This document shows, piece after piece, positions 42,676-46,770 of a stretch of DNA of 64,000 nt. The position numbers and the translations under genes are program-made. The notes under the pieces are model-generated. The model saw nothing but the letters and a program-made list of their open reading frames with translations, was not told the origin of the DNA and did not search any database. The DNA is taken from assembly GCA_965240325.2 (NCBI GenBank), contig OZ251230.1, positions 2,046,001-2,110,000 of the forward strand, in the 5' to 3' direction. The DNA comes from Rebecca billardiae RCC1528. Taxonomy: Eukaryota > Protista > Haptophyta. Each line of letters starts with the position of its first letter. Positions within the stretch are counted from its first letter, which is position 1.

Positions 42676-43289
42676 TCAGGGAGGCGTGCGCTCGTAGTCC
42701 CCGCTGCGGCCCCCGCTCTTCGCCTCCAGGCGGATGTCCGAGATCTCGATCTCCTTGGACGAGGCCTTGCACATGTCGTACAGCGTCAGGCCGGCGACAG
42801 AGACGGCCGTGAGCGCCTCCATCTCGACGCCCGTGGGCCCCCTCGCGCTCGCCGTCGCGCTGATCATCACGCTGTGCGCGGCTGCGTTGAGCGTGAGCTC
42901 GAGCTGCACGTTCGTGAGGGCGATGGGGTGGCACAGCGGGATGAGGTCGGCGGTGCGTTTGGCGCCCATCACGCCGGCGAGCTGGGCGACGGCGAGGGCG
43001 TCGCCCTTCTTCAGCTGGTTCTGCTCGAGCAGCTCGTAAGTGGCCTTGCCCAACTTGACCTGCGCGGATGCAACCGCGCGGCGCATGGCCGACCTGCGCC
43101 GCAGCACGTGCGTCACCGCCGTCAGCGCGGCCGGCGCTGAGTTGCGCAGGGCGAAGGCGCGCGCGCGTACTCGGGCTTGTCGGACACGTCGACCATCCGG
43201 GCTCTGCCGTCCTCGCCCACGTGTGTCAGCCTGGGCGGTTGCTTCATGATGGACATGGCGCGCCGGAAGACGCGCGATACGGCGGCCAT
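42676..43289 (-). CDS. moaC: Cyclic pyranopterin monophosphate synthase (molybdenum cofactor biosynthesis protein C), 2 exons, about 178 aa
   Basis: Exon 1 43289-43171 (MAAVSRVFRRAMS..., presequence-like; LTHVGEDGRARMVDVSDK). Intron 43170-43094 (GTACGC...GCTGAC...GCAG). Exon 2 43093-42676 with KKGDALAVAQLAGVMGAKRTADLIPLCHP, TGVEMEALTAVS, LTLYDMCKA and KSGG. Confidence 0.95.
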
Positions 43290-43446
43290 TGCTGGCACCG
43301 GCAAGGGTGGTCGCAAGTTCGCACCGGCCACCTTTCCTCATCCGGACCAGTTGTCCGGACAGTCATTCGTCAATTCACCGCGCGCCGTGGCGCCGACCGC
43401 CGTCGCGCCCCGTTCGTTGTGCCTTTGGCCGAACGGCGACGACGAC

Positions 43447-45789
43447 ATGGCGCCACCCATGTGCGCCTGCCCGGCGCTGGCGCTCGCGCTGCTGGCGGTC
43501 TGCGGCATGCTCGAACCGGTCGGCGCGTTCGCATGGACCCCTCGCCACGCCACCGCCGCCACGCGCCGCCTCTCTGCGCCCCGGCGGTGCGAGGCGAGCG
43601 CGCCGTCCTACCGGCCTGGGAGCATTGCCGAGGCGACGGCCAAGTCGGGCAAGGTGCCGTACGGCGAGTCGAGCCGGCCGTACCGGCGCACGGTGTACCG
43701 GCACGACGACTGGCTCAAGCACCGCGCGGAGGACCGGCTGCTGCGCAACCTCAGGGGCACGCTCACGTCCGGCGTGGTGCGCTCGCTGCGCAGCGCGCTC
43801 GGCTCAGTGATGGCGGTCGCGATCGGCACGCTGGTGTGGAACGCGGTGCTGTTCGGCTGGGACGACCTGGCGAACGTGCGGCACGGCGGGCTCTTCGGCG
43901 TCGTGCCGGACCTCCTCCGCGCCGAGCTGCCCATCTCCCTCTTCACCCTCTCCTCGCCCGCGCTCGGGCTGTTGCTGGTGTTCCGCACCAACACGTCGTA
44001 CGGCCGCTGGCTGGAGGCGCGGCAGATGTGGGGCCGGATCGTGTCGCACTGCCGCAACATCGTGCGGCAGTCGGCGCTGTGGGTCGACGAGGACGACCCG
44101 CGCGCGCGCGAGAGCCTCGACGAGCTCTGCGCGTGCGCCTGGGCCTTCCCGCGCGCGCTGTGGGCGCACCTGAGCTCGCCGGCCGAAGCCGAGCCGCGCT
44201 TCGAGGCCGATGTGCGCGCGGGGCTCGGCGAGGAGGCGGCGGCGTCGGTGCTCGAGGCGCGGCACCGGCCGCTGCGCGCGCTCGCGCTGCTCTCCGCCGC
44301 GATGGACCGCCTCCCCATCGACGAGAAGAAGCGCGTCGAGATGGACAAGTCGGTGATCCTGCTGGGCGACGCGTGCGAGACGTGCGAGCGCATCTACTCG
44401 GCGCCCGTGCCCCTCGTATACACGCGGCACACGGCGAGGTTCCTGTCGGTGTGGCTGCTGCTGCTGCCGCTCGGGCTGTGGGAGCCGTTCGCCGCGTCGT
44501 GGAACCACCTGGCCATCCTGCCCGCCGCGCTCGTCGTCGCCCTCTTCCTCTTCGGCATCGAGGAGCTCGCGGTGCAGCTCGAAGAGCCTTTTTCGATCCT
44601 TCCGCTCGAGCAGATCTGCGCGGAGCTCAAGGAGGCCTCGCACGAGATCGTGGAGGGGGTGGGCAAGGCGAGGGCGAGGCGGGCGAGGCCGCCGCCCAGG
44701 GCGCCGCCGCCGACGGGCGCGCGGGGCGGAGGCCCCTCCGGCGTGCGCATGTGCCTCGGCGCCGCCGCCGAGCTGGGCGCGCAGGCGGCGGCGGCGGCGG
44801 CCGCCGCCGCCGCCGCCGCCGCAACCGCCGCCGCGTCCGCCGAGCCCGCGGGCGCGGCCTCCGCGCTCGCGGCCGCACCCGGCCTCCTCGCCGGCGCGGC
44901 CGCGTCGGTGCTCTCGCCCATCGAGCGCGAGGAGCGCTACGCCCTCGCGGGCGGGCTCTGCGCCGCCGTCTCCCACGCGGTCGCCACGCCGGTCGACGTG
45001 GTGAAGACGCGGCAGCAGACAGTGCCGTCGTACGGCGGCACCTCGCTGCTGCAGGGGCTGGCGCGCGTGGTGCGCGAGGAGGGGCGCGGCGCGCTGCTCA
45101 CGGGGTTCGGGCCGACGGTGCTCGGGTACGGCGCGGAGGGCGCGCTCAAGTTCGGCGCGTACGAGGGGCTCAAGCCCGTCGCCACGTCCGCGCTCGCCGC
45201 CGCCGGGCTGGGCGCCGAGCAGAGCGGCGCGCTCGGCCCGGTGGCGGCGGGCATCGTCGCGGGCGGGCTCGCCTCGCTGCTGCTCGCGCCCGCGGAGGCG
45301 ACGCGGATCCGGATGGTGAGCGACCCGCAGTACGCGCGCCTCGGGCTCGGCCGCGCCGCGTCGCGGCTGTACGAGGCCGAGGGCTCGGCCGGGCTGCTCC
45401 GCGGCGTGCCCGCCACCTGCTCCAAGCAGCTGCCGTACACGGCGACCAAGCAGGTCACCTTTGACCTGCTCGTGAGGGCGGCGGCGGCGGCGCAGCCGGC
45501 GCTCGCGCCGCAGTGGGCGACGACGGCGGGGGCGGCCGCGTCCGCCGCGGTGCTCTCGACGCTCGCCTCGCAGCCCGGCGACGCCGTCCTCTCCGAGGTG
45601 AACCGCGGCGCAGCCGGCGGCGCTGACGACGCGGACGGCGCCGACCTCGGCGTGCTCGCCATCTCGGCGCGGCTCGGCGCGGCCGGGCTGGCGCGCGGCC
45701 TCGGCGCGCGGCTCGTGCACGTCGGCGTGATCGTCACGCTGCAGCTCATCCTGTACGACTCGCTCAAGCATGCGTTCGGCGTGCCGTGA
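43447..45789 (+). CDS. Plastid-type bestrophin (VCCN/BST-like, UPF0187) fused to a mitochondrial phosphate-carrier-like SLC25 domain, 780 aa
   Basis: Signal peptide plus GAF motif. Bestrophin motifs W..HR...R, LLLVFRTNTSYGRW.EAR..WG, CERIY..PVPLVYTRHTARFL and GIEELAVQLEEPF. After an Ala/Pro linker come carrier motifs TPVDVVKTRQQ, GYGAEGALKFGAYE, APAEATRIRMV, KQLPYT and SQPGDAVLS. There is no stop between the domains. Confidence 0.85.
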   Translation: MAPPMCACPALALALLAVCGMLEPVGAFAWTPRHATAATRRLSAPRRCEASAPSYRPGSIAEATAKSGKVPYGESSRPYRRTVYRHDDWLKHRAEDRLLRNLRGTLTSGVVRSLRSALGSVMAVAIGTLVWNAVLFGWDDLANVRHGGLFGVVPDLLRAELPISLFTLSSPALGLLLVFRTNTSYGRWLEARQMWGRIVSHCRNIVRQSALWVDEDDPRARESLDELCACAWAFPRALWAHLSSPAEAEPRFEADVRAGLGEEAAASVLEARHRPLRALALLSAAMDRLPIDEKKRVEMDKSVILLGDACETCERIYSAPVPLVYTRHTARFLSVWLLLLPLGLWEPFAASWNHLAILPAALVVALFLFGIEELAVQLEEPFSILPLEQICAELKEASHEIVEGVGKARARRARPPPRAPPPTGARGGGPSGVRMCLGAAAELGAQAAAAAAAAAAAAATAAASAEPAGAASALAAAPGLLAGAAASVLSPIEREERYALAGGLCAAVSHAVATPVDVVKTRQQTVPSYGGTSLLQGLARVVREEGRGALLTGFGPTVLGYGAEGALKFGAYEGLKPVATSALAAAGLGAEQSGALGPVAAGIVAGGLASLLLAPAEATRIRMVSDPQYARLGLGRAASRLYEAEGSAGLLRGVPATCSKQLPYTATKQVTFDLLVRAAAAAQPALAPQWATTAGAAASAAVLSTLASQPGDAVLSEVNRGAAGGADDADGADLGVLAISARLGAAGLARGLGARLVHVGVIVTLQLILYDSLKHAFGVP

Positions 45790-46770
45790 CTCCGCCCGCT
45801 GGCGATGCGGAATTGCCGGAGTCCTGCGGAGTCCTGTGATAGTCTGATAGATCACTGCTTGCTGATCAGCAGGCTGCGCGGGCCGTTGTTGCGACGTAGT
45901 CGACTGCTATATATACGTCACTCAGTACTCACTCACTGCATGCGCAAGACGCGCTGCTGAGTGCGCTGCTGAGTCGAGGTCGTCGCAGTGTATCGCGACA
46001 ATGAGTATTGATGGCAATAATACTCGTCGATCATACTCATACTCGTCGTCGTCAGTATGATGATACGTACATAATGCTTATGTCTATATGACCGCCGCCT
46101 GTCTTATGCTGGGCCAATATAAGTGCGGCGCATGCGCGCCAGCGCATATCATGCATCATCACTGCTACTCTAATCATGCATCACAGCGCGGACTCGACTG
46201 ACGCAGCCTACCGTTGCGTGCTGCCGGCGCGTCCGCGGCGACTGACTAGCGTATAGTAGTAGCGCGCAGGCACGGCGCTGCCTGTCTGCGTACGACCGTA
46301 CAGCAGCTGCCTGCAGCTGGCACCCGCGTGACACGGTCCGGTACGGACAGCACCATACCGTGTAAGTAACAGTGACCGACGACGTACGCTACTCGCTACT
46401 GTCGCTACTCGCTACGCTAGTAGCGTGCGCTGATGACCGACTAGTAGCAGACGACACTAGCCGCCGTCACGGACAGTCTGAGAGTGCGTCAGTGCCGCCG
46501 CGCCGCTTGTATACTGTTACTGTACTGTAGTACTAATCAATACGTAGTATACGAGTATTATTAGTCCTGCGTGACTGTAGTCGGACAGTCAGACACAGTC
46601 TGTCGCTGCTAAGCCATCAGGCATACACTTCTCGGCCCAGCGCGCAAGCATATGATGCGCTGCGCATGATTGATTGATTCACAGATATGACTGCTCTGTC
46701 TGCTGCTTATATATATATATATATATATTGTAGTTACGACAGTATATATTTATTAACGACGTGGCAGCAT

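Follow-up and report, generated by a model that had tools for sequence, protein, structure and literature searches.

The reading frame and its two domains

A 64,000-nucleotide stretch of the genome of the haptophyte Rebecca billardiae RCC1528 (NCBI GenBank assembly GCA_965240325.2, contig OZ251230.1, positions 2,046,001–2,110,000 of the forward strand; hereafter the window, numbered from its first letter) harbors, at 43447–45789 on the plus strand, a gene in which a bestrophin-type anion channel and a phosphate-carrier-like transporter of the SLC25 family are joined in one reading frame behind a putative plastid leader. In the list of open reading frames (ORFs) of the 64-kb window, this frame runs without stops from 43177 to the stop codon at 45787–45789, and translation from the ATG at 43447 yields a fusion protein of 780 residues. 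Overall, with a probability of about 0.78, the fusion represents one real gene translated as a single precursor with both halves intact, in the order signal peptide, transit peptide, bestrophin, linker, and SLC25 carrier, the two halves being plastid partners.

The N-terminal half is, on the evidence of sequence and predicted fold, a complete bestrophin protomer of the VCCN1/BST type, which by analogy with its family would form pentamers and conduct anions. The Bestrophin_2 domain (Pfam PF25539; residues 89–396, 43711–44634, plus strand) is matched over profile positions 2–284 of 288 with an E-value of 5.7e-64 and 216.8 bits against a cut-off of 27. A sequence search of the PDB returned VCCN1 (7ek1, E-value 5.1e-41) as the best solved relative, then the bacterial KpBest; a bestrhodopsin (7pl9) also matched this half, with an E-value of 8.5e-5. 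An AlphaFold2 model of the whole fusion, built from a 66-sequence alignment, was superposed by Foldseek on 7ek1 with a template modeling (TM) score of 0.77 and on KpBest with a score of ~0.83, both by target. The predicted local distance difference test (pLDDT) values of this model are mostly above 90 in both domains, and the predicted TM score (pTM) of the whole model is 0.51.

The C-terminal half (44935–45786, plus strand) comprises the three repeats and six helices of an SLC25/mitochondrial carrier domain. Pfam Mito_carr matches it in three stretches (E-value 1.1e-31, 108.9 bits against a cut-off of 22.3), six long helices were modeled, and UCP1 (8hbv) was matched by the carrier half with a TM score of 0.73 by target. 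The carrier signatures read PVDVVK (44989–45006), PAEATR (45289–45306), and PGDAVL (45574–45591), the third of them lacking K/R just as in the fungal phosphate carriers (PADTLL). The half also contains GYGAEGALKFGAYE, PAEATRIR, KQLPYT on helix 4, His 510 on helix 1, and an insertion before helix 6. Its nearest named relatives are fungal mitochondrial phosphate or Cu/Pi carriers (35–42% identity over the full carrier length); as follows from the alignment, it has in common with the fungal phosphate carriers the helix-1 His (SHA), PxDxxK, PxExxR/P.E.TRI, GY..G..KFG.YE, and [KR]Q.PYT. The algal relatives are labeled by the Joint Genome Institute (JGI) as SLC25 member 3 or SLC25 phosphate transporter 3.

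One position in the carrier half deserves separate mention. The fungal helix-3 motif AEFFAD corresponds to AGGLAS in the window (45259–45276), so that Glu is replaced by Gly; all of the fused clade and the diatom-like plastid relatives have this Gly, and the Glu is kept in carriers from Micromonas. The Glu of AEFFAD and the helix-1 His presumably correspond to residues that mutagenesis of yeast Mir1 is reported to have tied to H+-coupled phosphate transport, the Glu as part of the proton path. The difference at this position hints that proton coupling or the substrate itself differs between the fused and the Micromonas groups.

Phylogenies were built for each half, as an earlier note on this DNA (made by a model from the letters alone) had proposed; these were quick-mode trees with few outgroups. 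In the bestrophin tree, six fused channels form a clade (support 99) grouped with the Micromonas-type channels (support 98), and the named diatom bestrophins fall outside. In the carrier tree (n = 65; outgroups fungal only), the algal proteins are split from nine fungal phosphate carriers (support 100), and the fused carriers, the carrier of locus L004, and four stand-alone carriers with plastid leaders of their own form an algal clade (support 100). The carrier half is, on this evidence, phosphate-carrier-like and outside the clade of mitochondrial phosphate carriers, phosphate being a candidate substrate by the likenesses listed above. The stand-alone algal carriers P0217, P0222, P0224, P0088, and P0078 possess their own signal peptide and ASAF-type motif (e.g., GSALA/FHA and PAAS/FFP, the slash denoting here and below the putative cleavage site) and, therefore, a family of plastid-targeted, phosphate-carrier-like SLC25 proteins seems to be widespread among algae with complex plastids. 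The MCFc family (bioRxiv 10.1101/2024.12.16.628690), compared by description, was considered as the family of the carrier half and rejected; unlike the carrier half, it is described as having no KEGG assignment and little likeness to the other MCF proteins of Phaeodactylum.

Both domains are preceded by what appears to be a single plastid leader. The start codon and a signal peptide (residues 1–27, MAPPMCACPALALALLAVCGMLEPVGA; 43447–43527, plus strand) are indicated by the translation, by hydropathy above 1.6 centered on residues 10–22, and by a modeled helix at residues 9–20. The signal peptide ends in VGA/FAW, with Phe at +1 as in the ASAFAP-type motif of complex red-type plastids, and is followed by a transit-peptide-like stretch rich in R, S, T, A, and P (residues 28–55; 43528–43611, plus strand), ending at a conserved RPGS motif, with which the mature bestrophin portion begins; the pLDDT values of residues 19–50 are below 50. 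The leaders of the orthologs are alike, e.g., AVCSAASA/FVLP in L001, PCST/FVQ in L007, and CSG/LLL in L003, each continuing into an R/S/T/A/P-rich stretch. Such bipartite leaders, judged here by eye and by hydropathy, are a mark of algae with four-membrane, red-type plastids (PMC3774753), and the window protein appears to belong to the nuclear-encoded type furnished with them. Thus, the main features that the earlier note had read from this frame, namely its continuity (43447–45789), the plastid leader, the complete VCCN/BST-type bestrophin, and the full three-repeat, phosphate-carrier-like SLC25 with the motifs quoted there, were all recovered.

Conservation of the joined frame and of the gene pair

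Taken alone, the uninterrupted frame in the window amounts to no more than chance, since all three forward frames of the linker region (44611–44949; GC content 84%) are stop-free, and its shuffled versions stay open in-frame in 49% of trials. It is the codon composition and the homologs that place the frame beyond chance. The GC content at third codon positions (GC3) is 0.93–1.0 in the fusion frame in every 90-nt segment from start to stop, linker included, and 0.62 directly after the stop.

A protein search yielded six homologs (P0001–P0006) containing both Pfam domains and aligning with the window protein end to end at 61–69% identity, all of them on contigs of genomic DNA from marine metagenomes, Tara Oceans among them. 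Searches blind to the fusion recovered more copies of it: L006, L038/L039, L046, and L022/L023 from the bestrophin pattern, as well as P0036 and P0216. So far, the fusion, which the earlier note had suggested seeking in other algae, is represented by 12 distinct sequences from marine metagenomes, 61–72% identical, with linkers of ~65–140 residues in nearly as many lengths, all in phase and stop-free; none of the public proteins searched exceeded 72% identity to the window protein. Among 50%-identity representatives, an exhaustive HMMER search found single-domain proteins only, except P0036, although clusters with a fragment as the representative can hide fusions; the fusion hence seems to be confined to one clade. 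The ESM Atlas, searched with the whole protein, gave no match by features and only single-domain clusters by shape, and no two-domain protein from a named organism was found in the collections searched.

Homologs with a less extreme base composition were compared as well. In the loci L001, L003, L006, L039, and L046 (linker GC 0.65–0.76), the fusion frame is stop-free in all five cases, and the other forward frames of the linker mostly contain stops, except that L003/L006 have one other frame open. By chance, a linker would be open in-frame with a probability of 0.14–0.37 per locus, before a factor of 1/3 for phase; with this factor, our arithmetic gives a joint chance of ~1e-5 over the five lineages, which are partly dependent. 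Between the close strains L003 and L006 (synonymous divergence, dS, of the gene 0.10), the linker differs at six bases, and all six differences are synonymous. The ratio of nonsynonymous to synonymous divergence (dN/dS) of the linker is 0.59 for L039 vs. L046 and 0.30 for L001 vs. L003; for the latter pair, it is 0.12–0.13 in both domain halves. Furthermore, stand-alone channel relatives (L010, L024, L026, and the Micromonas type) stop 25–45 residues after ILPLE, whereas members of the fused clade never do. Overall, these codon-level comparisons show that selection keeps the linker frame throughout a marine algal clade. Because this GC-rich DNA has several open frames, the first explanation weighed was that two genes are read through by chance; it was rejected on GC3, the conservation of phase, the lower-GC homologs, and the synonymous-only changes.

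The earlier note had also allowed for an intron at 44659–44784 that would keep the frame. A GT/AG pair does exist there, but the segment has a GC3 of 0.98 in frame and holds linker motifs conserved in intronless homologs, so this suggestion was dropped. Introns do occur in the fused genes of some relatives (L046, ~716–800 and 1020–1175; L039, ~1700–1840; and L023) and consist of simple, TAACCC-like or GCCCTC-like repeats; they are flanked by direct duplications of 10–20 nt of exon sequence and look like introner-type insertions with target-site duplications.

Outside the fused clade, the two genes are found side by side. In 21 Micromonas-type loci retrieved by the bestrophin-pattern scan (L011–L019, L032, L033, L035–L037, and L048–L054, e.g., L011 2088–5080), which make up four or more divergent sequence groups, the bestrophin gene is preceded by a Mito_carr gene on the opposite strand, with start codons ~270–400 bp apart. 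The bestrophins of these loci begin with simple transit-peptide-like N-termini, and their carriers bear the same phosphate-carrier-type motifs as the window protein. As to their origin, the L011 carrier shares 98% identity with a Micromonas pusilla protein in UniRef, and the Atlas cluster of the channel consists mostly of Chlorophyta. Since a fusion in one clade together with a conserved neighborhood in another is the classic signature of a working partnership, the bestrophin and the carrier very probably work together. Common descent of the gene pair is likely for the channel, judging by the bestrophin tree.

One lineage within the fused clade is itself unfused. In L004 (1–1268) and L061 (1–1124), two independent assemblies with 93% DNA identity, the bestrophin and carrier genes stand head to head, 50–130 bp apart, and the carrier starts at exactly the Met that is conserved in the linkers of the fused proteins (see below). 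This carrier displays no visible bipartite leader and is under strong purifying selection (dN/dS 0.05).

The linker and the fate of the proposed precursor

The linker spans ~110 residues in the window protein and is divided by Met 435 (44749–44751, plus strand), which is kept in all 12 fused sequences. Its first part (44611–44748, plus strand) comprises the last bestrophin helix and, after it, a basic, Pro/Arg/Gly-rich, transit-peptide-like segment, KARARRARPPPRAPPPTGARGGGPSGVR, predicted to be disordered in the AlphaFold2 model; the GC3 of this part is 0.98 in frame. Its second part (44752–44934, plus strand) is a variable Ala-rich spacer with a poly-Ala run at 44785–44826, ending in a conserved pre-helix, SVLSPIEREERY; its pLDDT values are 58–66, and neither its length nor its sequence is conserved among the homologs. 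The motif RARRARPPPRAPPP...GVRMC and the poly-Ala run are thus both present in the window. Across the eleven aligned sequences and L023, four elements follow one another in a fixed sequence: S[TA]RxP[LM]P at the end of the last bestrophin helix; a stretch rich in basic and poor in acidic residues; the invariant Met (DVQ/M, DAK/M, GVR/M); and a variable hydrophobic or Ala-rich spacer ending in LLAALS..E..ERYF before carrier helix 1. Within the linker, pLDDT falls below 50 over a single long segment, residues 421–445, with Met 435 inside.

The N-terminal transit peptides of the fused proteins end in x-x-Met in 7 of 10 cases (e.g., GVQ/M, SCC/M, PCV/M, ALV/M), a few residues before RPGS. According to N-terminal proteomics of the diatom Thalassiosira, the residue preceding the cut in transit peptides is small or charged, and the protein then mostly begins with Ala, Ser, or a Met removed later (PMC3774753). 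The linker looks like an internal transit-peptide end because its basic stretch and x-x-Met resemble the N-terminal transit-peptide ends and conform to this rule, which agrees with the resemblance to an internal transit peptide noticed in the earlier note. A cut at the linker Met after import is, hence, plausible, and Met 435 could mark position +1 of a processing site, act as an internal start, or do both. The role of an internal start has to be entertained because the Met is more strictly conserved in the linker than at the transit-peptide end and serves as the start codon in L004/L061.

Under the preferred reading, the precursor would be imported into the plastid as one chain, its single bipartite leader taking both partners across four membranes at a 1:1 ratio. 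For the mature form, we lean slightly, and at somewhat less than even odds, towards a cut in the stroma just before the linker Met, giving a polyprotein of two proteins rather than a tethered pair. Both partners would reside in the inner membrane system of the plastid, most likely in the thylakoid, where the channel half, like VCCN1/BST, would pass Cl- or HCO3- across the membrane and the carrier half might transport phosphate or another small anion of that sort, perhaps together with H+. As the N-terminus of the carrier follows the stromal C-terminus of the channel, the “matrix” face of the carrier would be turned toward the lumen. A phosphate/H+ symporter oriented in this way would export lumenal phosphate down the pH gradient, complementing a channel that trades membrane potential for pH gradient, although the coupling may differ from phosphate/H+ symport because the helix-3 Glu is missing. 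Together, the channel and the carrier might set the anion balance of the lumen and how the proton-motive force is divided, or else feed the CO2-concentrating mechanism.

The alternative that survives best concerns the same precursor and holds that its chain is never cut: a five-protomer pore would carry on each protomer a tethered six-helix carrier in the same membrane, and their fluxes would be physically coupled. The frame open over 12 sequences and the purifying selection acting on the linker between close strains are consistent with such a permanent chimera, as is the geometry, since the C-terminus of the bestrophin and the N-terminus of the carrier can share a side of the membrane, and a disordered linker of at least 65 residues reaches back to it. 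The joining of an algal bestrophin to another membrane module in bestrhodopsin (7pl9) provides a precedent. On the other hand, the partners are separate in Micromonas and in L004/L061, so the covalent link is dispensable for function; a variable linker with a transit-peptide-like stretch and a Met is more what one would expect of a spacer containing a processing site than of a structured coupler, and the AlphaFold2 model (pTM 0.51) has no confident contact between the domains. We regard the permanent chimera as a serious yet doubtful option. Its fullest form, an assembly of ~400 kDa with five covalently tethered phosphate-type carriers around a pentameric anion channel, coupling passive to carrier-mediated (possibly H+-coupled) fluxes, seems unlikely. 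The rest of the weight falls on mixed cases, including an additional carrier-only product initiated at Met 435.

A more radical explanation is that two genes merely look fused, being expressed from separate transcripts or starts (an internal promoter or Met 435), with a functionless open frame between them. The window linker, open in all three forward frames from composition alone, would permit this, and so would the invariant Met 435, the true start of the unfused carrier in L004/L061. However, no lineage has acquired a stop over the ~45 codons between the bestrophin domain and this Met, where the stand-alone relatives do stop, and the phase has been maintained through many indels. The GC3 profile continues through the linker, and its changes between L003 and L006 are synonymous only. 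Moreover, a carrier begun at Met 435 would lack the leader needed to enter a plastid with four membranes, and the ~120 nt from the bestrophin tail to the next start are too short for a terminator and a promoter. All this makes two separate genes improbable. An artefact or a dead gene (an assembly indel hiding a stop or a frameshift, or a decaying pseudogene) deserves next to no credence: it could draw on the very high GC content and the poly-Ala run at 44785–44826, which are hard to sequence but point to nothing specific, whereas the same architecture recurs in independent assemblies from many samples, and both domains score as full-length, with intact motifs and the low dN/dS of both halves in L001 vs. 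L003.

Several points, nevertheless, weigh against the reading of one gene with one precursor and two plastid partners. The single mRNA and the single polypeptide are what we infer from genomic DNA, and Met 435 could act as an internal start, given that the L004/L061 carrier beginning there appears functional by its dN/dS. As for the partnership, the Micromonas carriers fall inside the algal family in the carrier tree but on a long branch, not adjoining the fused carriers; as they are not sister to the latter, the two linkages might be separate in origin. No carrier gene was found within 4 kb of the Micromonas-type bestrophin loci L009, L027, and L040, nor was a bestrophin neighbor found for the stand-alone algal carriers L056 and L057. 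Finally, with Gly in place of the helix-3 Glu, phosphate/H+ symport by the carrier half is a guess.

Related systems, significance, and flanking sequence

The channel half has well-known counterparts. VCCN1 (7ek1), the voltage-dependent Cl- channel of plant thylakoids, resembles it over the whole protomer in both sequence and fold. Algal BST1-3 and the diatom BSTs are putative thylakoid HCO3- channels. The diatom BSTs also possess a plastid leader, as the fusion does (PMC11142338). In contrast to all of these, the fusion has a C-terminal extension holding a whole second transporter, and its channel falls not in the diatom BST subclades but in a subclade that also includes Micromonas-type green algae.

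The carrier half shares its motifs with PiC/SLC25A3/Mir1 and Pic2 (the Cu/Pi carrier), its nearest named relatives; unlike PiC/SLC25A3/Mir1, it stands behind a plastid leader instead of mitochondrial targeting and belongs to the separate algal clade. Phatr3_J11866, a predicted plastid-targeted SLC25 protein of the diatom Phaeodactylum annotated as a phosphate transporter, is reported to have a bipartite plastid leader and plastid enrichment (Liu et al., bioRxiv 10.1101/2024.12.16.628690). By its description, it is the same kind of protein as the stand-alone carriers P0078, P0217, and P0222; it differs from the fusion in standing alone, and the word bestrophin has no occurrence in that report.

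Two other kinds of system resemble the joined architecture. The bestrhodopsins of marine algae (rhodopsin-rhodopsin-bestrophin, e.g., 7pl9) combine, as the fusion does, an algal bestrophin with another membrane module in one chain. The partner of the channel in bestrhodopsins is an N-terminal light sensor gating it, and these proteins are not known to be targeted to the plastid; the partner in the fusion is, by contrast, C-terminal and a transporter. The plastid polyproteins of euglenids and dinoflagellates (LHC, RbcS) use one leader for several mature membrane or stromal proteins, and their linkers are cut after import. Similarly to such precursors, the fusion has two proteins behind one leader; the basic stretch with x-x-Met in all 12 linkers is a candidate processing site. 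Yet the known polyproteins are repeats of one protein with short conserved linkers, whereas the fusion unites two unrelated transporters through a long variable one. In the literature on bestrophins, haptophyte bestrophins, and plastid polyproteins, we found no description of either the fusion or the Micromonas gene pair; what is new is the domain architecture and the functional link, both within known types of system.

These findings matter since current models of how algae concentrate CO2 and tune the proton-motive force assign a central role to thylakoid bestrophins, whose working partners are still being sought, and plastid phosphate-type SLC25 carriers have so far been only predicted. The conserved fusion and the divergent pair in Micromonas name a specific partner for the channel, and Micromonas is experimentally tractable. 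Cleavage of the precursor would make it a polyprotein that yields two unlike transporters in an alga whose complex plastid is of the red type, of which we found no description in the literature searched. If the chain stays uncut, it would represent a new channel–carrier architecture, a supercomplex of a kind undescribed for either family.

Upstream of the fusion gene and head to head with it lies a MoaC gene, coding for cyclic pyranopterin monophosphate synthase (42676–43341, minus strand; ORF list, Pfam MoaC, E-value 4.3e-50), with ~105 bp between the two starts; this gap implies a very short promoter region common to both genes. The in-frame ATGs 5' of 43447 overlap the MoaC gene; because of this, and because a signal peptide stands at the very beginning of the orthologs, 43447 is the start to prefer. 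Spurious long ORFs cover both strands across the fusion locus in the ORF list. At the other end, both GC and GC3 drop sharply 3' of the stop codon (45787–45789, plus strand), GC going from ~0.8 to 0.46–0.6 (45800–46750). Within the same interval, the 3' flank has a (TA)n tract at about 46706–46730 along with short repeats such as actcactc and gtactgta, its composition forming a sharp contrast between coding and non-coding sequence in this genome.

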